Positions 5,572 through 47,354 of a stretch of DNA of 64,000 nucleotides are shown here, one piece after another (the stretch's first letter is position 1; every line of letters begins with the position of its first letter). The notes beneath the pieces are model-generated. The model worked only from the letters and a program-made list of their open reading frames with translations, did no database searches and was not told the origin of the DNA. A program made the position numbers and the translations under genes. The stretch comes from Anthoceros angustus (Eukaryota; Plantae; Anthocerotophyta), in the NCBI GenBank assembly GCA_010909165.1, contig VJWM01000025.1, forward strand, positions 2,976,001 to 3,040,000, read 5' to 3'.

Positions 5572-8500
5572 ATGGCGTTCTCGGGCAGGACTATGGCAGG
5601 CTTGGCGCTAATAGTGGCCGTGAGTGATCGAGTTTACATTTCATGCTAGCTTTCCAGTCCTTGATGCAAGTTTGGAGTTCGATTAGTTTGTATCCGTGGT
5701 TGTTGTCGTATTGATTCGGGCTTTGTCCACTTGTGTTGTTGCAGCTACTAGCGATTGTTGCAGGGAGCTCTACAGGTTTGCCGGTGAGCGTACAGTGAAG
5801 TCTGGATAGACAGTAGTATTGTGGTTCGGGGGTGATTGTAGTAGGAATGGCATGGTGCGGTAGAAAATGCAGGCTGATTGTGAGAGTGGGTTTGATTATG
5901 TTGTGGGGATTCGCATGCAGTTCTTGTCAACCAGTCCGCGAAAGTTGTTGGTCGGCAATTACCGCCATTTCGAGTGCAACAGCAATGAGAAGTCGGGAGT
6001 GTGGGATCCTGCTGTGAGGGATAATGACCTGTCGGTAGACGACGATGCGAGGGACGTTCCTGGCTACGTCAAGTATACAAGTCCCAGGTCTATGAAGCTG
6101 GAAACCGAAGACGACTACTCTAAGAAGCCGGGTCAGGAGGAAAAGAAGGGAGAGGAGAAAAAGGAGGAGGAGGAGAGGCAAAAGAAGGAAGAGCCTAAAA
6201 AGAAAGAGGAGAAGAAAGAGAAGCAGAAGAAGGACGAGGACGAGCAGGAGACGAAGAAGGAAGAGGAGGAAAAGAACAAGGAGGAGAAAGGAGAGGAACA
6301 GAAGAAGAACGGAGAGAAACAGAAGGAGGAAAAGGAAAAGAACAAGGAAGAGAACAAGGGAGAGAAACAGGAGGAGGAGGAAAAGAACAAGGAGGAGGAG
6401 AAGAAGGGAGAGGAACAGAAGGAGGAGGAAAAGAACAAGGAGGAGGAGAAGAAGGGAGAGGAACAGAAGGAGGAGGAAAAGAACAAGCAGGAGGAGAAGA
6501 AGGGAGAGGAACAGAAGGAGGAGGAAAAGAACCAGCAGGAGGAGAAGCAGGGAGAGGAACAGAAGGAGGAGGAAAAGAACGAGCACGAGGAGAAGCAGGG
6601 AGAGGAACAGAAGGAGGAGGAAAAGAACGAGGAGGAAAAGAACGAGCACGAGGAGAAGCAGGGAGAGGAACAGAAGGAGGAGGAAAAGAACGAGCAGGAG
6701 GAGAAGCAGGAGAGGAACAGAAGGAGGAGGAAAAGAACGAGCACGAGGAGAAGCAGGAGAGGAACAGAAGGAGGAGGAAAAGAACGAGCAGGAGGAGAAG
6801 CAGGGAGAGGAACAGAAGGAGGAGGAAAAGAACGAGCACGAGGAGAAGCAGGGAGAGGAACAGAAGGAGGAGGAAAAGAACGAGCAGGAGGAGAAGCAGG
6901 AGAGGAACAGAAGGAGGAGGAAAAGAACGAGCACGAGGAGAAGCAGGAGAGGAACAGAAGGAGGAGGAAAAGAACGAGCACGAGGAGAAGCAGGGAGAGG
7001 AACAGAAGGAGGAGGAAAAGGAGGAGAAGCAGGGAGAGGAACAGAAGGAGGAGGAAAAGAACGAGCAGGAGGAGAAGCAGGAGAGGAGGAGGAGGAGGAA
7101 AGAACGAGCAGGAGGAGAAGCAGGGAGAGGAACAGAAGGAGGAGGAAAAGAACGAGCAGGAGGAGAGAGGGACAGAAGGAGGAGGAGGAAAAGAACGAAA
7201 AGAACGAGGAGGAGGAGAAGCAGGAGAGGGACAGAAGGAGGAGGAGGAAAAGAACGAAAAGAACGAGGAGGAGGAGAAGCAGGGAGAGGGACAGAAGGAG
7301 GAGGAGGAAAAGAACGAAAAGAACGAGGAGGAGGAGAAGCAGGGAGAGGGACAGGAGGAGGAGGAGGAAAAGAACGAAAAGAACGAGGAGGAGGAGAAGC
7401 AGGGAGAGGGACCGGAGGAGGAGGAGGAAAAGAACAAGGAGGAGGAGAAGCAGGGAGAGGGACCTGAGGAGGAGGAGGAAAAGAACAAGGAGGAGGAGAA
7501 GCAGGGAGAGAAGAAGGAACAAGAGGAGGAGGAGAACAAGGAGGAGAAGAAGGAGGGACAGAAGAAGGAACAAGAGGAGGAGGAGAACAAGGAGGAGAAG
7601 AAGAGGGGAGAGGAGGAGGAAAAGAACGAGGAGAAGGAGGGACAGAAGAAGGAAGAGGAGGGACAGAAGCAGGAAGAGGAGGAGAAGAAGGGAGAGGAGG
7701 AAAAGAAGAGGGGAGAGGAGGAAAAGAAGAGGGGAGAGGAGGAAAAGAAGAGGGGAGAGGAGGAAGAGAAGAGGGGAGAGGAACAGAAGAAGAGGGGAGA
7801 GGAGGAGGAGAACCAGGAGGAGGAGAAGAGGGGAGAGGAGGAGGAGAACCAGGAGGAGGAGAAGAGGGAGAGGAACAGAAGAAAAGAGGGAGAGGAACAG
7901 AAGAGGGAGAGGAGGAGGAGAACCAGGAGGAGGAGAAGAGGGAGAGGAGGAGGAGAACCAGGAGGAGGAGAAGAGGGAGAGGAGGAGAACCAGGAGGAGA
8001 AGAAGAGGGAGAGGAGGAGGAGAACCAGGAGAAGGAGAAGAGGGAGAGGAGGAAAAGAAGAGGGAGAGGAGGAGGAGAAGTGGGGAGAGAACAGAAGAGG
8101 GAGAGGAGGAGGAGAACCAAGAGAAGGAGAAGAGGGAGAGGAACAGAAGAAGAGGGAGAGGAGGAGGAGAACCAGGAGAAGGAGAAGAGGGAGAGGAAGA
8201 GGAGGAACAGAAGAAGAGGGAGAGGAGGAGGAGAACCAGGAGAAGGAGAAGAGGGGAGAGGAGGAAAAGAAGAGGGGAGAGAAACAGAAGAAGAGGGGAG
8301 AGGAGGAGGAGAACCAGGAGGAGAGGAGAAGAGGAGAGGAACAGAAGAAGGAGAGGAGGAAAAGAAGAGGAGAGGAGGAAAAGAAGAGGGAGAGGAGGAA
8401 AAGAAGAGGGGAGAGGAGGAAGAGAAGAGGGAGAGGAACAGAAGAAGAGGGAGAGGAGGAGGAGAACCAGGAGGAGGAGAAGAGGGAGAGGAGGAGGAGA

Positions 8501-9400
8501 ACCAGGAGGAGGAGAAGAGGGGAGAGGAACAGAAGAAAAAGAGGGGAGAGGAACAGAAGAAGAGGGGAGAGGAGGAGGAGAACCAGGAGGAGGAGAAGAG
8601 GGGAGAGGAGGAGGAGAACCAGGAGGAGGAGAAGAGGGGAGAGGAGGAGGAGAACCAGGAGGAGAAGAAGAGGGGAGAGGAGGAGGAGAACCAGGAGAAG
8701 GAGAAGAGGGGAGAGGAGGAAAAGAAGAGGGGAGAGGAGGAGGAGAAGTGGGGAGAGGAACAGAAGAAGAGGGGAGAGGAGGAGGAGAACCAAGAGAAGG
8801 AGAAGAGGGGAGAGGAACAGAAGAAGAGGGGAGAGGAGGAGGAGAACCAGGAGAAGGAGAAGAGGGGAGAGGAGGAAAAGAAGAGGGGAGCGAAACAGAA
8901 GAAGAGGGGAGAGGAGGAGGAGAACCAGGAGAAGGAGAAGAGGGGAGAGGAGGAAAAGAAGAGGGGAGAGAAACAGAAGAAGAGGGGAGAGGAGGAGGAG
9001 AACCAGGAGAAGGAGAAGAGGGGAGAGGAACAGAAGAAGAGGGGAGAGGAGGAGGAGAACAAGGAGAAGAAGAGGGGAGAGGAGGAACAGAAGAAGAGGG
9101 GAGAGGAGGAGGAGAACCAGGAGAAGGAGAGGGGAGAGGAGGAACAGAAGAAAAGGGGAGAGGAGGAGGAGAACAAGGAGGAGAAAAAGAGGGGAGAGGA
9201 GGAACAGAAGAAGAGGGGAGAGGAGGAGGAGAACCAGGAGAAGGAGAACAAGGAGGAACAGAAGAAGAGGGGAGAGGAGGAACAGAAGAAGAGGGGAGAG
9301 GAGGAGGAGAACAAGGAGGAACAGAAGAACAGGGGAGAGGAGGAGGAGAACCAGGAGAAGGAGAACAAGGAGGAACAGAAGAAGAAGGACAAATAGATAG
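5572..9400 (+). CDS. Secreted Glu/Lys-rich repetitive protein (3 exons: 5572-5619, 5745-5783, 5921-~9396)
   Basis: Two phase-0 GT-AG introns join MAFSGRTMAGLALIVA+LLAIVAGSSTGLP+FLSTSPRKLL..., giving a signal peptide. About 3.3 kb of GAG/AAG-rich repeats follow, with frame switches in purine runs. Confidence 0.7.
6130..9395 (+). repeat. Polypurine low-complexity tract of nested 15-48 bp repeats
   Basis: The top strand is almost free of T for ~3.3 kb. Units include gaggaggaaaagaacaaggaggaggagaagaagggagaggaacagaag. Confidence 0.95.
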
Positions 9401-9542
9401 CTTTCTGCATGATTGCATGATTACTGTATTCGTTACTACTATCCAAGCTGAATAAGCGCTCATGCCAGCTGAATTCACGCAGCTTTCAGTTTTCTAGCAA
9501 TCCACATACTTATAACCTGCCCGTCTATAATCTGCCCTTCAG

Positions 9543-10806
9543 AGAAGGGGCTAATTCCATCCAACCCGACACTCTCTTACTGCGGAATCGATTAGCTCAC
9601 ATAGCGATGAAAGAGCTGGTGTAGCTGCTGCATCTGCTGACTATGATGAAGATGGACGTGAAGAATATGCCTGGAGCACTGTATCATGCAGAAGTTGGGA
9701 CGTAATTGCAGGAAATTGTGTTACCATCGTGAACCACCCCTGTATGGTTCAATCGATACAGATGCATTTCTCGGCCGGAAGGTGGTCTCAGATCGCTTGT
9801 TTGACAATCAAGAAGGAAGGTTGGTAGTCTGAGTGTGCCCAGAGCTAGGTTTTTGACACATGATTGGTGAAGTCTTGCCACAACACTGTTAGTTGGTGCG
9901 CAGGTGGGTTGATCTTTCCGTCATTCGTATGAATATGGATGAGTCAAAAATGTGTGCTGGCCGATCAGTGTGCTGTGTTGACCGAAAGGGAACAGGCAGA
10001 ACTCAGCAATCAATGAATGAAATGAACCGATAACATAGAACTGATGCACTTACGTGTCAGGGCTCTCTCTCCTCTTGCAATTCTCATATGAACTTTGTTC
10101 ATTCTTCAGGTATGGCTTCTTTGTAGCCAACTATGGCGGTCTTATGAAGGTATGGGCTTTCTGGAATCGAAGAAACCTTGCATAATATTCCACACTGGGA
10201 TTTTCTATTGAATATTTGAGGTGTGCCTTCGCTTTGTTGGCGTCATGTCTACATACAAGAGCAGCTGTTTGGGCTATCTGAAGACAATTTTGTGGTGGAC
10301 ATGGCCCAAGGAGCAGGGCTTATAACTTATCCAGCTGGTGGCCGTGCACTTAATTCTCTTCCTCTTGTTTCTGACCATGACATGGATATTTTTGCTCGCA
10401 ACGAGGTAAACAGGTTGACAAGAAGCATTCATGAACTTAACATCATTCAGAGCTTGTATCCTTGTACTTAGCGGATATACTAAAAACGAAGCTCAAAACT
10501 GGCGTGTCGTCAGGGTGGGGCAAACTCTCTGTTTCGACACGAGGACGATGGTACAGGAAAATACGAAGAATGTGCTGGGGCGCTCGGGTAAGGAAAGCTA
10601 GCTAGTGTCCAAATAATATCAGAGGTCTCTGTTTAGAGTTGAGGGAAGGTTGTGGCACTTGTCAATTAGCTAAAGTTGCTTTGTGTTGCGGGCCTGGTCC
10701 TCGAGGAGAGGCCACACATACAGTCATTACTGCTGATTCTGACGATGATGGCTATGAGGAGCTTTTCTTCAACAATATCGGTTAGGGCAACAAGCTTTTC
10801 CGGCAG
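9543..10806 (+). pseudogene. CRTAC1-like (FG-GAP repeat / ASPIC-UnbV family) gene remnant with introns
   Basis: Colinear exon peptides: GVAAASADYDEDGREE; AFLGRKVVSDRLF; YGFFVANYGGLMK; DMAQGAGLITYPAGGRAL...DIFARNE; GANSLFRHEDDGT; TVITADSDDDGYEELFFNNIG*GNKLFRQ. There is an in-frame TAG at 10783-10785 and frameshifts. Confidence 0.75.
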
Positions 10807-11330
10807 GTACCCCTGATTCTGATCACTGGACAGTAGATAGGGGGGTTTTGGGTTTTTGCAGAACCTTCGACGGTTTAGTGTGCCTCCTGCACACTTCCGC
10901 GATGAGGGGATTCAGGATTCCAGGGATACTTTCCAGAACGATGTGGAGAACGTGGAAACGCCTGTGTCCTTAAGAACTCCTCCTACAAATTTCATTGCTG
11001 CTGGTTCATGGCTTCAGGCTTGGGGCCCTAAAATGTGGCAACACACAACTACGAGGGCCCGTCGTCCTTAAAATGCTCATCACCTCAAGGTAGTTGCCTG
11101 AATGAACCCAGTTTCCTCCTCCTGAGTTCCTACCTACTGGCCCTTCTGTCCACCAAGTCCTCAGGAACTATTGAAGCCGAAACTTGCTAAAGTCAAGCTG
11201 ATAAACTGTCACAGCACGCTTCCGACAAGTTCCGTTCCTTCTGGAAGTTAGTCCTTAAACAAAACAACAAAAAATGTGAGTCAACCGCTGAGAAGCAGCT
11301 TGCTGAGGACATGGCACAGTGGCCTTGAAC

Positions 11331-12647
11331 TCAAAGCCTCAAATTCGGCATGGGTTGGAAAACTTCCCCCACTCCAGCCATACTCTGGGGAACCTTTCGC
11401 CAGCAACGTCGAAGCATGTCGTAAGCAACAGGACAATCCACCTTCGTCGTCCTGAGACCACGAAACCACAACTCATAAAAGAAAACCACGAGATCCCCAG
11501 CAACGCGCACACACTTCAACCTCAAAGAGTGCGGCCTCAAAGCGGGGCAATGCCACATCCCACAGGTGCCCTGCACCCGTCTCCGTGCTCAGCCGCACAA
11601 GCCGCGGGGGAGTGCCGTAGACCGTCGAGTACAAGTCTCCATTGCACACCACAGGCGGCGGATCACTCATCTCGACCTCAGGGCTAGCTAAGAAGCCCTT
11701 CCACTCACCAGTGATGCTGCTGTACATGGCCAGGCCCTTAAACAATCGATCGGCTACAGGGAGCAAAAACTTGGGAAGTGGTCCAACAGGAGGAACATAA
11801 ACCTTGAAGCTGGGAATGCCTTCTGTTGCAGTGACTGTTCCCATCAACAGGACGACATGATGGCTCCAAACATTCTCAAGAATAGGCAAAACTTTGAAGC
11901 TTTGGTTCACAGGGTTGACCACACATATATGCATTCCCTCGTGTCGGCGATTGCTAATGCACATGAAACCAGTCGGTGAGCAATTGTGAAGTAGCGATTC
12001 CCAAGAATGGAACACCGCTGGTAAGAAAGACAGATCCACTTTCAAGCTCTTCTATACGCGCGGAATTGATACCAGTTCCTCCGGGGAATCATACGGCTTG
12101 AGATGGTATTCCTCTTCAGGCCAATACCTGTAGGCACATAGCGGATGCGGCGTCGTCCGCGAAAGCGAAAGGAGAAAGCTCCGCCGGGAAAACTCTGGAT
12201 TGGCGAGCAAGGCAAGCCAGGCCTTGCACACAGTTCGGCAGCGGGCCTGCGCTGCCGCCGGTAACCGCAACAGCACCTCTTCAACCACTTCCTCGGGCAA
12301 TGTGAGGCTGGCCTCAGAGCGCACCACAGTGCCTGCTGCTGCTGCTGCGCTGGTAAAGCCGTCATCGCCAAGCTCTTCCCCCACCAGGTAAAGTGTCAAA
12401 CGGGAGAAACAAGGTTCATGAACCAGGTCCGCACGCCCCTCGGAAGTCTCTTCATCACTCTCCTCATCACTGGGATGCTCGCCGACCGGTTGAGGCCACT
12501 CACGCAGCAAATTTTGAGGCCACATACGCAACATATTTGTTGACGCCAAATTCTCATCCCGCAAATCTTGAGGCCACATACGCAACATACTTGTTGCCGC
12601 AAAATTCTCAGCCCACGACCTGGGTAGGTTGTGTGGTGCGGAGACCA
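11331..12647 (-). pseudogene. F-box protein, disrupted
   Basis: F-box LPEEVVEEVLLRLPAAAQARCRTVCKAW. An in-frame TAG at 12052-12054 (PRV*KSLKVDLSFLP, W expected) is followed by an F-box-associated region (CVVNPV, YSSITGEW). A frameshift precedes the ...VAYD..RRCWRKVP...FQP tail. Confidence 0.75.
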
Positions 12648-13154
12648 TAGAAGGATACTCGTTTGGGGCCTGCAATCCTTCTCATGCTTCACCTACGGCC
12701 CTGGAAGCCAGTCTCAGAACTGCTCCACTTCAGAGGCCTCCACTTCCTGCACGAGAAACAAATTCAGCACCCCCTTCCAATGGACTGCAACTACCACCCT
12801 CCACAGGCCATCCTTCTAACTTGGGACTTCTACTGTGCCATCTTCTGAAATGGCGGACCCAGGGTGCCAAAACCATGGTCTGACTGGCGGGTGTGGGACG
12901 CCTCGAGAGAAGCGATGTATCAAAACGGCCACGGAAAACATACAATGGGTCGTGAAAAAATGTTTTTTCAGGTCTTTTTTGGTAGGGTTTAGTGTTGGCG
13001 TTGTGGTACACCATACAGGACACTCCAATGACATGTGGGTACCGGAGGCCGCTTCTAAACGCTTGTTAGGTCTCCTCTTGCCTGTCGGCTGGGAAGCGAG
13101 CTGGTCTTGAATATCCATCGCAGGCGACAGGAAGGAAGGGCGAATTGCTCCACC

Positions 13155-14546
13155 ATGGCGAAGCGTGGGTTGATGGAGCAGGATTTGAGCAAGTTGGAGG
13201 TGGACAAGCTGCATCCGCAGTCTCCAGAGGTGATCTCCCGGCAGGCAACGATAAATCTTGGAACAATCGGGCATGTGGCTCACGGGAAGTCGACGGTGGT
13301 GAAGGCCATCTCGGGAGTGCAGACAGTGCGATTCAAGAACGAGCTGGTTCGGAACATCACTATCAAGCTAGGTTATGCGAATGCGAAGATCTATGTCTGC
13401 GAGAACGAGAACTGTCCTCGGCCTGTGCGTTACAAGGCCTATGGCAGTGGCAAGGAGGACAGCCCACTGTGTGATGTGCCTGGGTTTGAGACCTCTCGGA
13501 TGAAGCTGTTGCGGCATGTGTCTTTTGTGGACTGTCCTGGACATGATATTCTCATGGCTACTATGCTCAATGGTGCTGCAATCATGGACGGGGCCCTGCT
13601 GCTCATTGCGAGCAACGAGAGCTGTCCGCAGCCACAGACTTCAGAGCATCTGGCTGCTGTGGAGATCATGCGTCTCAAGCATATTATTATTTTGCAGAAC
13701 AAAATCGATCTTATCCAGGAAAGCGTGGCAATGAACCAGCACGAGTCTATCCAGAAGTTTATTCAGGGTACCATTGCAGACGGTGCACCAATAGTGCCAA
13801 TATCGGCACAGCTGAAGTACAATGTGGATGTTGTATGCGAGTATATCGTGAACAGGATTCCCATCCCGGAGCGCAATTTTGTTGCTCCACCCAACATGAT
13901 TGTTATCAGGTCCTTTGATGTGAACAAGCCTGGAGCTGAAGTGGATGACATTAAAGGAGGAGTTGCAGGGGGCAGCATCTTGAGAGGTGTGCTGAAGGTT
14001 GGGCAGAAGATTGAGGTTCGGCCAGGACAGGTGACCAAGGATGAGAGTGGCAGCATCAAGTGCACCCCTATTTTCTCGAGGATCATCTCCCTGTACGCGG
14101 AGCAGAACGAGCTGCAATTTGCAGTGCCCGGTGGTCTCATTGGCGTCGGCACTACCATTGATCCCACTCTGACTCGAGCTGACAGGTTGGTTGGTCAAGT
14201 GCTTGGTGAAGTTGGGGAGCTACCAGAAGTTTTTGTTGAGCTTGAGGTGAACTTCTTTCTTCTTCGGCGACTGTTGGGTGTGAGGACTAAGGGCACTGAG
14301 AAGCAAGGGAAAGTTAGTAAGCTAACGAAAGGAGAGGTGCTCATGTTGAACATTGGGTCCATGTCAACTGGTGCACGGGTGCTGGCCGTCAGGAATGATC
14401 TTGCCAAGCTGCAGCTCACTTCACCGGTTTGCACAAGCAAGGGAGAAAAGGTTGCCCTCAGCAGAAGAGTTGAGAACCATTGGCGATTAATTGGTTGGGG
14501 TCAAATCCAGGCCGGAGTACAGCTCGACATCCCCCCAGTAGCATAG
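13155..14546 (+). CDS. EIF2G: Translation initiation factor eIF2 gamma subunit, single exon
   Basis: [37 protein letters not shown]-terminal WRLIGWG; uninterrupted ORF. Confidence 0.97.
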
Positions 14547-27967: not shown

Positions 27968-30203
27968 CAAGTAGCTTAGACACACATGGTGCAAGTTGTT
28001 AAGTACAAGTCCCATAACGGAAATCCGTCCGGAGTGGACTTAAATAAAATTCTTTCTTCTTCTTCATTAGCGTATACCGTACCTCGAAGGGTGGTTCAAC
28101 AGGATAATGCCGAAATAATTATTTTTTGAAAAAAACAAGGTTCAACATAAATATTTATATTTTTCAAAAATTCAACATTTATAAAAAATAATTTTATCAA
28201 ATTTCAACATTTATTAAAATATATAGGTATATATAAAACTAATGGATATGTATAGATCTCCCCTAAATAGACCCTAATTTTCCACACAAACCCTAGTTTC
28301 CTTATTTTCGGCATCATAAACTCATAAATTTTTACCTATTCAACATTTTAAGTATAATAATTTCTGGATTTTCAACTTTTACTAATTTTAATTAATTAAT
28401 GCCGAATCACCCCTTGGGGTACGGGTACTCTTGATGTCCCGTCCGACAACCAGAGAAGATCGTCCTCCGTGATGACGTGGCCTTATAGGCCGTACCCGCA
28501 GCCCTCTATGGCCATCGGCCCATCGGGTATCCATGGGAAAGTTAGCTATCGATGTGCCGGCCGCCATGAGACGCTGTGTGTATGTATATATGTGGACGGA
28601 TTCGTCCGACACGCGACACGGTGTAAGCTTCGATTCTTGTCCTTTTCCGGTGAGGAAATGGGATTTGGATGAATGGGAGAGCTGGTTGTGATATGGAAGC
28701 AGCTGGGGAAGGTCCTGCTTGCTGAGGGTCGGGTCCGTCAAATTTCTTGGAAGGGGGGAGATGCAACAGCTCATCCACTTGGGGAGAAGTTTGATTTGAA
28801 CCAGGCAACCGGACAAGGTCCTGCTTGTTGAGACATCTGTGTGAGCTAAGGCTTCCAGTTTCGACTTCCTGTCACGAAAAAATGGCTGGACAGTTAAGGC
28901 AGGTAGAATTCCGTTCGAAGTGTGGCTGTGTGAGCTTCCAATGTCTCTAGGCTTGGCTTGAGGACTCCGATTAAAGAAGTGACTGATGAAGCAGGTCGTT
29001 TGTTTGAAGGATTACTTACTGTGTAGGCTTGGGCTCTCGACTTCCTACAAGGCTGTAAACAACTCCAAGAAAAAAAGAAAGGCCAAACTGATGAAGCAGG
29101 TCACCAGTCTTCAGGAAGGATGTGCGACACGTCGTCATACGAGACCAACAGAAGCAAGAGAACGTCATACGTCAACGGCAACAGGAACGTTAAAAGAATG
29201 GCCAATCTGATGAAGCAGGTCATCCGTTCGAAGGCTTGGCTGCAGGTGTGAGCTTTCAGTATCGACCTTCTGTGGAAGTCGGATTCGAAGGAAAGCCGAA
29301 ATGGAGCAGAAGGAGGAAGGCAAAGCCCTGAATGCATATGGTGAGCTCAGTATCCGTTTCAAGGTTCGCGTGCCATACAGACGCCAAGCTCATCAGTGAG
29401 ATTCTGAATCTTTGATTTCAAAAACGCAACAAGCAACAGTCTGAACAATGAACAAAAGGCAACAGGCAACAGTCTGAAGTTCCAACTCCTGCACACTGCT
29501 GGATTCAGATAGAGACCTGTGTGAGCTTCCATTCTCGACTTCCCGTGATCAAGAAGTCGGACAACAAGAATGATTTCGCGAGCGGATGACGCAGGTATCC
29601 GATCCAACCGCTCATCGCTTGAGAAGAGTAGGAGGAAACTAGGGTTGATCTCAACAAGACAAGTTGAGAGCCAAGGTTTACAACAGGAACGCCATGTCCA
29701 GGAATCGAAGCTTGCACATCTTTGCTTACAAATGTAGTAGGTATGTGATCATCCTCTTCTTTCTTGGAACATACATACAAGCATGTGCAGCTCAGGCGAT
29801 GGTTCTTGAAATCCAAGATACAGACGTTGTCCAGAATTGAAGCTCTCAGAGCGGTGCCAGCAGTTGGTGCATTCATGACTTCAAACCCTAGGCTAAGAGC
29901 TAGCTGTTTTGGAAAGCAGTAACCACAGTGGCGGCCTCTCCACATTGCTTCAAGAAAATGCTGTGTGTTGTGTGTGCGCTTCTTCACAGTACTGATGAGT
30001 AGGTATGTGTGTGTCTGCAGTGCCTACCGGTTTCTTCATTGAGTGCAGGAAGAAGGGATGTAAAAGAATGTTGCCGCTGCCGAAAGAATGTTTGCTGCTG
30101 CCGAAAGAATGTTTGCTGCTGCTGCTTCAAGAAGAGGAAGAAGCAGAAGAAGATGTCTCGGAAGCAGAGCGCTGGCTGGCTGTCTGGAGTGGCGATGGTG
30201 CAG

Positions 30204-31339
30204 CTAATAGTCATCGACGGGCCTGCCAGCCATGGTGTAGGCGGGGCCGTGGGGGCCTTTGAAGGGAGAGTAGGCGCCTGGGCCGGGAGTGTCCTCCTTG
30301 TTGTGGTCGTGGTTCCTGGCGCCGAGGCTGAAGGCGGGGGCGGAGCCGGGAGGAGCCTCGTAGGCGCCGGGGCCGGGGGTCTTCTCGCCGCGCCAGGGGT
30401 TGTACCTGCGGCCCATGGAGAAGGCGCCGGGGGAGGGCTTAGTGAGCGCCACCCGGGGGTTGTACTCGCTCGGGCCAGGCGTCTTGGAGGCGTGGGAGTG
30501 GTCGTTGCGGCCTGCCATGGAGTAAGCTGGCATGTCGGAGTCGTCTTGGACAGAGTAGGCGCCAGGGCCCGGGGTGTCGCTCCCCATGTGGCCCGTAGGC
30601 CTCCCGGCCATGGAGTAAGCAGGGCCTCCTCTCCGGGCGCGGGTGTCGTAGGTGCCGGGCCCCGGCGAGCAGTCGTCGCGGTGGTTCTTCCCGCGGCCGG
30701 CCATGGAGAAGGCGATGCCCTTGCTGTGGCGCGGGGAGTAGGCGCCGGGCCCGGGCACGTCGCTGTCCGCCTTGAGCTTGGTGCGGATACGCAGGCTGTA
30801 TGCGGGAGCTGAGGACTTCCTGTCAGGGTTGTAGGCGCCGGGCCGGGCATGTCGTCCCCGACGTGGTCCCCGACGCGGCCCGCCAGGAGAAGGCGGGCGC
30901 GCTCCGGGCCGCCTCGTACGCCCCAGGCCCGGCGTGATGGAGGTGTTGCTGGCTCGAGGGCGGGTGCGCATGGAGTAGGCCGGGCCGTCACGGCAGCCCT
31001 TGAGTGTAGGCGCCGGGCCCGCACGCCGCTCCTGTAGCCTTGGCTCCTGCTGCTGGTGCCCATGGAAGGCCGGGGCGCGTCCTTCGTGCAGTGGTCGTTG
31101 GCGGAGTAGGCTCCCGGGCCCGGCGCCCGCTGTGAGAGATTCACCACCGTCCGCCCGGACATGGTGTAGGCCGGGCCCCTCCCGGGCCGCGTGGGGGAGT
31201 ATGTCCCCGGCCCCGGCTGCGAGATGTCGTTCCTCGACCCGATCTTGCCTGCCATGCTGTATGCCGGGGGGGAGGTGCGCACCGCCATGATGTTAGCGTG
31301 GTAGGCCCCAGGGCCCGGGGTTCTCTCTCGGCGAGGCAT
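30204..31339 (-). CDS. ODF3/SHIPPO (PGPGxY STPG-repeat) sperm-tail/axonemal protein, intronless, with apparent frameshifts
   Basis: About 12 PGPG(A/T)Y repeats alternate with PA(Y/F)(S/T)M motifs. Several 1-bp deletions in C/G runs at ~30830-31030 break the frame. Confidence 0.85.
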
Positions 31340-45800: not shown

Positions 45801-47354
45801 TCTGTACATGGCAGGGTTTGACAGGGAGTTGAGGTAACGAGAACTCATGTGACCAGCTCGACAATGCCAAAGGAGGGAGTCCGACTTGGATAGAGACTTA
45901 GAAGATGACTTTTGGGCATCTACCAACAGGGAAGTTGACTGGATGTTTAGGAGATAAAGATCGTTGAATGGGAGACCGTGTGCAAGAGTGGTTCTGGAAG
46001 GGTCATTAAGTTTGTGAATAAGACAGTGATTACCCTGGAATGTGATGACCAAGTTGTGCTCGGTTGCCAATTTGCGTACTGATAAGAGGTTCTTTGTCAT
46101 GCTGGGAACGTGCAGAACTCCGGTGATGAGAAGGTGTTCGCCGTTTGAGAGCTGCAGTGAGACGTTGCCGGTGCCTGCTACTGCCAGGGCGCTGTCGTCT
46201 CCTAGAAGGACATGCTGATGTGCTGGTGAATCGTGGTAAGATTCGAAAGCCTCCTTGCTGCAGCAAATGTGAGTGGTTGCACCCGAATCCAGGAACCATC
46301 TGTTTTCTTCTGTCCTGGTAAGTGTCAGGCATACAGCGAGCACAGATGTAGGTGAAGTTGTCTTGACACTGGTGAAGTGTGACTCATTTCTAGGTGCATC
46401 GCGGCGTGGCTCGCCGGCAAGTTTCTTCCTACACTCATTCTCGTAGTGCCCGGGAATTCGGCACCAATTACAGGGGCCTTTGGTCCTCTTGTCGGGCTGT
46501 CTGCCGCCACTGGAGAATGATTGGGAAGAGGGTCTTCGTGCCTGGAAGTTGCTGCGGCCGCTGCCTCTCCTGGCTCCGCGTCCTCTTGTGGTAAATAACG
46601 CGTGAGTGCTCGACGGTGCTGACTTGTGATTTGCAGTTCTGCTGGACTCCTCTTCAAGAAGGGCTGCAACCACCTCTGTGAGCGTGTAATTGGGCTGCTG
46701 TCCTGCTGCAGTTGCATTAATAGCTGCTCGGATTGCTGAGTTCTGTGCGCTGATAAATGTTCTGTACGCAGGTGGCAAGGAGGTTAGGAGGGCCACTGCA
46801 GCTTGGTGTTCGGAGATAACGGTACCTCCTGAAGCCAGCTTTGCTCGGAGAGATCGAAACAGGTTCACATGCTGTTCGACTGTGTCCGAGTCCTTCATTC
46901 GTAGTGAATAAAACTGTCTGGTTGCGTTGATTAAGGACATGCTGCTTTGGGCCTGAAACATGTCCTTGAAGGTCCTCCAGATGGCGTTGGAAGTGGTTTG
47001 GCCACTTGTGTGGTGCATCATGCTCTTGTCGATGGCTGAGATCAAGATGCTACGGGCGCGCTTGTCCTTTTTAATCCAGGCTGCAACTTGATCAGCAGTT
47101 GCAGGAGGATTTGCAGTGATGGAGGGTTGGGCGACAGTACCGTCGACTATCCCCATGAGATCATGCTCTTCTAGCAGCGCGGTGATGCGCATCTGCCAGA
47201 TGTCATAGTCGCTTCCTGTGAAGCGGTCTCGGTCTCGGAATTCGACCTTAGTTGTATTCACGATTTGAGTCATGGGTGTTCGCTGTGCAAGATGGGTGAG
47301 TTTCTTGGCGAGCAACTTGGTTGTATGCTGACCTAAAGGGTCGAAATGGGGCAT
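42843..47354 (-). CDS. Copia Gag-Pol polyprotein, one frame, interrupted by a single TAG at 44817-44819
   Basis: CNWCRIPGHYENEC knuckle; WFLDSGAT protease; WHCRAGH...CEIC and HSDICGP/TDNAGEY/ERLNR integrase; PLRRSTR; YKARLVARGF, LYGLKQS, LYVDD RT; SDADWAG, CDNQSA RNase H. Start at ATG 47354 or 47273. Confidence 0.95.

Follow-up and report, generated by a model that had tools for sequence, protein, structure and literature searches.

A window of 64,000 nucleotides (64 kb) from the hornwort Anthoceros angustus contains seven colinear exon remnants of a CRTAC-family FG-GAP propeller gene at positions 9609-10806 of the forward strand. The stretch is very probably an ordinary unprocessed, intron-containing partial pseudogene that works as nothing and has its parent elsewhere. 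It has the hallmarks of that class, namely introns at the parental positions, disabling lesions and a relative that very probably resides in the same genome. A sequence-only reading of the same DNA had described a dead CRTAC1-like gene copy, either acquired horizontally or patchily retained; the identification and the decay hold, and the history of the gene requires revision.

Full-length plant members of the family match the stretch by tblastn with E values of 1e-27 (P0004), 5e-31 (P0008) and 4e-33 (P0017) and have no credible match in the rest of the 64 kb, where all others have E>0.05. A three-frame reading of 9400-11100, together with the tblastn matches, recovers CRTAC1-like peptides at the place and in the order described earlier. 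A weak recurring tblastn match at 46256-46306 (-) arises by chance, out of frame, within the protease/gag region of a copia-type retrotransposon (46150-46420, -; ...WFLDSGATTHICCSKEAFESY...VLLGDDSALAVAGTGNV). Across all six frames of the window there are two Dx[DN]x[DN]G motifs, both at the pseudogene (9639 and 10735). When the exons were searched one at a time with phmmer against 177,635 PDB sequences, segment 9893-10030 had "Cartilage acidic protein 1" (9etn_A, residues 127-162, E=0.015) as its sole match and segment 10606-10782 had residues 316-337 of the same entry as its best (E=0.017), the two matches being colinear. Segments 9555-9824, 9662-9829, 10220-10468 and 10484-10588 gave no CRTAC1 match in PDB, and Pfam searches of each exon segment singly, too short on their own, returned nothing relevant and no FG-GAP domain. 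The fifth exon (query 10220-10468), searched with phmmer against 1.84 billion proteins, gave 10 matches at E<=0.001, including a 490-aa protein of Spirogloea muscicola that is 62% identical across the exon (P0004) and a 287-aa fragment (P0008). Both of these long matches carry FG-GAP_3 and FG-GAP when tested. Seven others are short ORFs (62-162 aa) representing fragments of the same exon, most of which run on into the flanking intron, and an 878-aa match (P0010) is an unrelated repetitive protein. ESM Atlas look-alikes of this exon were noise only, with methyltransferases at 0.85. The significant and colinear similarity places the stretch within the CRTAC family.

All exon remnants lie on the forward strand. 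E1 (9615-9665, AGVAAASADYDEDGREE) encodes a blade with a Ca-type DxDxDG motif and carries 6 extra nucleotides, inserted in frame, compared with the expressed paralogue described below, with homology to the transcript beginning at 9617. Intron 1 (9666-9739; 74 nt, phase 0) has the borders TA..CC, both splice signals being lost, and corresponds to the intron that follows residue 168 in Sphagnum. Previously taken for a frameshift, the switch of frame from the first peptide to the second is this intron without its GT and AG; a real frame break does exist further downstream, at a missing 91-nt exon. Read in frame 3, positions 9665-9755 (+; ...SCRSWDVIAGNCVTIVNHP...) resemble WD40 proteins in PDB (5mzh_A, E=0.007; FBXW7, E=0.03), which is probably a chance resemblance, and intron 1 may alternatively include filler DNA from a WD40 gene. 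E2 (9740-9819, LYGSIDTDAFLGRKVVSDRLFDNQEG followed by R) has a diverged first ~16 nt and a 3-nt indel relative to the transcript, and is followed by intron 2 (9820-9903, GT..AG). E3 (9904-9999, WVDLSVIRMNMDESKMCAGRSVCCVDRKGTG followed by R, with the piece WVDL...CAGRSVCCVDRKGTG) had been overlooked, so that the six exon peptides reported earlier are present and the count becomes seven. Intron 3 (10000-10109, AA..AG) has lost its donor. E4 (10110-10149, YGFFVANYGGLMK) ends at a GT donor and is followed by intron 4 (10150-10264, GT..AG), E5 (10265-10405; 47 codons, ...YPAGGRALNSLPL...DIFARNE, with AG and GT at its flanks) and intron 5 (10406-10513, GT..AG). Three family-invariant residues are altered in E5. 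E6 (10514-10587, GGANSLFRHEDDGTGKYEECAGALG) also ends at a GT donor, and a gap of 82 nt (10588-10669, GT..AG) then stands in place of two introns and the 91-nt exon. E7 (10670-10806; ...GPGPRGEATHTVITADSDDDGYEELFFNNIG-stop-GNKLFRQ) has lost ~25 codons internally and ends at a GT donor (10807) that leads to no downstream exon in the window. The exons are thus mostly bounded by GT-AG sites, as had been noted (introns 2, 4 and 5, the 82-nt gap after E6, and the donor after E7), and the copy corresponds to roughly residues 154-415 out of 564 in the Sphagnum protein.

The lesions are numerous. A TAG stop at 10783-10785 falls inside the FFNNIG motif (FFNNIG-stop-GNKLFRQ), and the reading frame is broken because the ancestral 91-nt exon following E6 (Sphagnum residues 312-341, the "HGRG/CRG" blade) has been lost. 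Two introns, 1 and 3, no longer have functional splice signals. The C-terminal third of the plant proteins, including UnbV_ASPIC (PF07593), is unmatched anywhere in the window, and exons before about residue 150 and after LFRQ are absent from the 64 kb. The stop, the missing HGRG segment and the missing C-terminus had all been recognized from the bare sequence. Among ~107 residues that are invariant in ten aligned streptophyte proteins, 17 are altered in the window copy, with E1 read in colinear register. What is left does not amount to a full propeller: two Dx[DN]xDG calcium motifs remain, and the fragment has neither the N-terminal blades, nor that of Sphagnum residues 312-341, nor any past residue 415. 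Its ends show no terminal repeats, whether inverted or direct, which led us to reject transposon capture as its origin.

A spliced relative of the fragment was found in the one public sequencing run seen to contain part of the stretch (X1, from 2019; 71,256 contigs, 29 Mb, recorded as "RNA?"), the Logan contigs of which were compared with window positions 9400-12700. Several contigs are 100% identical to the window over 10959-12700 and X1 therefore derives from the same species. A contig of 5005 nt at a depth of 45.5 matches the exons alone, with 33 differences listed over 402 nt (~92% identity). Its exon joints span introns 2, 4 and 5, at GT..AG, as well as introns 1 and 3; between 10580 and 10711 it has 224 nt against 130 in the window, accounting for the missing exon and codons. 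The contig extends at least 255 nt past the match at both ends; the 30 nt upstream of 9617 translate to PLEDPDRKAI, extending the family consensus TPLEDPERRAIGVAAGD, and 30-mers from both flanks of the match are absent from the window. The length of the contig greatly exceeds that of the coding region in its relatives (~1.5 kb). At all four visible conserved-site differences the contig, and not the window, has the family residue: E rather than G at 10311, the T of YPTGGR rather than A at 10334, V rather than N at 10352-3, and the N of DFDNDG rather than D at 10744. This pattern is that of a constrained, expressed parent and an unconstrained copy. Because this spliced contig holds the parts missing from the window, we infer that it derives from an expressed paralogue in this same genome, and an intact paralogue very probably exists elsewhere in it, as the sequence-only reading had anticipated. 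The hornwort parent protein was missing from the matches of two word searches with full-length queries, which covered lengths of 270-857 aa and 349-1110 aa, and JGI metagenome contigs do not contain a 30-mer taken from its transcript.

It is highly unlikely that a live gene, or a portion of one, resides here, whether as a truncated and divergent paralogue, as exons taken up by a neighboring gene, or as a transcribed pseudogene regulating its parent by antisense or small RNA. Most splice sites are intact and an X1 contig at a depth of ~2 seems to span the fragment including its introns, but that contig may reflect either weak transcription or DNA carry-over, and no spliced form of the locus itself occurs among the X1 contigs. 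Moreover, the stop lies in the most conserved motif, the frame is broken, two introns are dead, no gene start or end is present within 64 kb, and invariant residues that the parent keeps are altered. In our reading the fragment has no function.

We propose that a piece of genomic DNA bearing seven middle exons of the plant's CRTAC-family gene was duplicated here, presumably at the DNA level, and then decayed. The parent is predicted to encode a leaderless, bacterial-type core of ~455 residues consisting of an FG-GAP/VCBS Ca-binding beta-propeller and UnbV_ASPIC, without an EGF domain. The fragment cannot form a propeller: UnbV_ASPIC is entirely gone, as are approximately the first two blades, a single inner blade and those at the end. 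It is further disabled by the premature stop, the frame break and the dead splice sites.

The family to which the parent belongs was delineated by two word searches of a database that includes NCBI and UniRef, the first using P0004 as query and the second a profile built from ten plant proteins (A1). The same twelve streptophyte proteins top both searches, and comprise members from Klebsormidium nitens, Spirogloea (two), Sphagnum balticum, Ceratodon purpureus, Physcomitrium patens, Adiantum and Ceratopteris, one EukProt transcriptome sequence and three Logan transcripts. They are mutually 62-70% identical. Ranked below them are ~1,600-2,000 bacterial proteins of ~455 aa from Thermostichus and other cyanobacteria, Chloroflexota and Armatimonadota (46-58% identity), many of which are named "CRTAC1 family protein". 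FG-GAP, FG-GAP_3 and UnbV_ASPIC (PF07593) are present in all listed matches save three truncated plant gene models. The Sphagnum protein (P0014) matches 9etn_A over its residues 96-560 (20-498 of CRTAC1) with E=1.2e-100, and the membership of the plant proteins in the CRTAC family is therefore firm, in keeping with the original assignment. All significant matches are of this type with UnbV_ASPIC, and DEX1-like, NERD1-type or other plant FG-GAP proteins were not among them; the stretch is accordingly not a relic of an ordinary plant FG-GAP gene such as DEX1. Pfam detected no EGF domain in any plant or bacterial member listed, and the combination of EGF-like calcium-binding domain and signal peptide that marks vertebrate-type CRTAC1 was not found, identifying the plant family, to judge from its domains, as the EGF-less, CRTAC2/bacterial type.

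No seed-plant member occurs among the matches listed in the two word searches, which agrees with the earlier remark that none is known from angiosperms. In a database including NCBI and UniRef, a seed-plant orthologue would outrank the bacteria. The suggestion of patchy retention is thereby upheld, the family being present in non-seed streptophytes and not found in seed plants. The implied novelty of a plant member is not, as the Physcomitrium patens protein (A1XF86_PHYPA, P0020) already bears the name "Cartilage acidic protein 2" in UniProt; the Adiantum member is called "ASPIC/UnbV domain-containing protein". Moss and fern models (P0013, P0014, P0016, P0019, P0020) have a Ser/Arg/Ala-rich N-terminal extension of 55-95 aa that looks like an organellar transit peptide, and the Klebsormidium model (P0021) has one of ~160 aa with a hydrophobic stretch. 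Some plant models start MF.D.S like bacterial members (leaderless, ~455 aa).

A maximum likelihood tree (LG+C20+F+G4; 46 rows, 463 columns), unrooted and built without animal sequences, has the twelve streptophytes on one side of a 100/98 branch, with fern, moss and charophyte subclades recovered, and bacteria on the other, the cyanobacteria not forming one clade. The nearest neighbor of the streptophyte clade is P0135, which shares its source transcriptome study with P0012 and is probably a second eukaryotic paralogue; as its branch lies beyond those of every other streptophyte sequence, this paralogue may be old. Runs SRR8128902-7 of that study contain two divergent CRTAC-like transcripts, L003/L004 (P0135) and L005/L006 (P0012), with AT-rich 3' UTRs. 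Intron positions were read off the genomic loci of the genes from Sphagnum and Klebsormidium (L001 and L002), onto which their exons were mapped. The Sphagnum gene has introns after residues 168, 194, 226, 239, 286, 311, 341 and 415, and all seven borders in the window copy coincide with Sphagnum positions (168, 194, 226, 239, 286, 311 and 415). Klebsormidium has introns at three of the same places, namely after YGGxMK, after A(Y/L)G and after LFRQ. The gene with its introns is therefore older than land plants, and the CRTAC family is vertically inherited in streptophytes.

These observations refute a scenario in which the hornwort lineage recently received a bacterial CRTAC-like gene, for instance from cyanobacterial symbionts, with subsequent intron gain and decay; we now regard it as extremely improbable. 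The motifs are indeed of bacterial type and hornworts do host cyanobacteria, but the window exons are nearer to plant proteins (60-81% identity per exon) than to bacterial ones, the introns are shared with Sphagnum and Klebsormidium, and the streptophytes form a single clade. The horizontal acquisition raised by the sequence-only reading fails as an event of this lineage, since streptophyte algae, mosses and ferns have the gene by vertical descent, the very distribution named there as incompatible with it.

The only surviving form of the lateral transfer idea concerns the family and not the window locus: the whole streptophyte CRTAC family may have come from an ancient bacterial donor (a cyanobacterium, possibly the plastid endosymbiont, or a Chloroflexota-like bacterium), gained introns and later been lost in seed plants. 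We consider this origin plausible and hold it tentatively, at somewhat less than even chances. At equal database size the Sphagnum protein scores 557 bits against Thermostichus proteins and 341 against vertebrate CRTAC1, although this closer bacterial similarity could reflect faster change in vertebrates. The compact forms ANYGGxM and FFNNIGxxNRLF are common to plants and every bacterial member checked, CRTAC1 having insertions there, and their description as bacterial in type was correct. Bacterial members are leaderless, several plant models have a transit-peptide-like N-terminal extension, and streptophytes are the only eukaryotes among the ~2000 matches listed. Against this origin, the streptophytes lie beside, not within, the sampled cyanobacteria in a tree that has neither root nor animals, and the cyanobacteria do not form one clade in it. 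Simple plastid inheritance also predicts members in other Archaeplastida, of which none was found. On balance the comparisons are suggestive of an ancient ancestry for the whole family that may be bacterial or plastid-related. A fuller version, in which streptophyte CRTAC is a bacterium-derived (perhaps cyanobacterial, plastid-targeted) Ca-binding propeller that seed plants lost and that survives solely in charophyte algae, bryophytes and ferns, and in which the hornwort parent may bear an extra part, strikes us as rather unlikely to be correct in its entirety.

The neighborhood of the pseudogene is heterogeneous. Upstream lies a purine-rich (GAR/AGG-type) repeat array of ~3 kb (window 5867-9400, array 6324-9374) with nested periods of 21, 48, 57, 78 and 190 nt and a GC skew of ~+0.7; it maintains a 1177-codon open frame (+) of E/K/R/G runs, and the array stops ~200 nt short of the pseudogene. 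Immediately downstream is an F-box protein gene (11473-12675, -; also given as 12052-12675; F-box E=9e-8), which is probably expressed given the identical X1 contigs that cover it. Positions 13107-14546 (+) comprise an uninterrupted 479-codon ORF with GTP_EFTU, GTP_EFTU_D2 and eIF2_C (E down to 4e-33), the full eIF2-gamma architecture; intron-less in a plant nuclear genome, it may be a retrogene. A 451-codon ORF at 29984-31339 (-) encodes a SHIPPO sperm-tail PG-rich repeat (E=2e-12), as would suit a plant whose sperm are flagellated, and together with the F-box gene it fits a non-seed land plant.

The window locus itself is one more decayed gene fragment and of little importance. The family behind it is of modest interest: in non-seed streptophytes CRTAC/ASPIC is an expressed gene of long standing, with introns, that is apparently missing from seed plants and is much nearer to the leaderless bacterial form than to CRTAC1. 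Work on CRTAC/ASPIC has dealt almost exclusively with the vertebrate protein of cartilage, lung and neural tissue. The abstract of a 2010 paper by Redruello and colleagues is said to list "bryophyta". A literature search found no paper treating plant CRTAC, the traces being the UniProt name and the title of Redruello et al. 2010. If the bacterium-derived reading is true, the pseudogene points to an unstudied, lineage-restricted plant protein.

Among known systems, the streptophyte CRTAC proteins (A1XF86_PHYPA/P0020, Sphagnum P0014, Klebsormidium KFL_000120540/P0021) are the closest to the window copy, having the same exon order and intron positions and sharing the blade motifs GVAAGDFDGDG, CAGRSVC.VDR.G.G, FFVANYGG, YPTGGR, GGPNFLF and DFDNDGYEELFFNNIG..NRLFRQ. 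Unlike them, the window copy lacks residues 312-341, ~25 more and UnbV_ASPIC, and has a stop and dead splice sites. Bacterial "CRTAC1 family proteins" (NCBI naming) resemble the plant proteins in core length, motifs and Pfam domains but are intron-less and without an N-terminal extension, and their identity to the window exons (32-64%) is below the plant figure. Vertebrate CRTAC1/ASPIC (9etn_A) and teleost CRTAC2 have the fold family and domain order (propeller and UnbV_ASPIC) of the plant proteins; CRTAC1, however, is secreted, with an EGF-Ca domain and insertions after ANY and FFNNI, whereas plant and bacterial forms are compact, without EGF and with no signal peptide in the models seen. Compared with transposon-captured gene fragments, the window copy has no terminal repeats. 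Like unprocessed plant pseudogenes, it combines introns at parental positions with partial coverage, a stop, a frame break and relaxed constraint.
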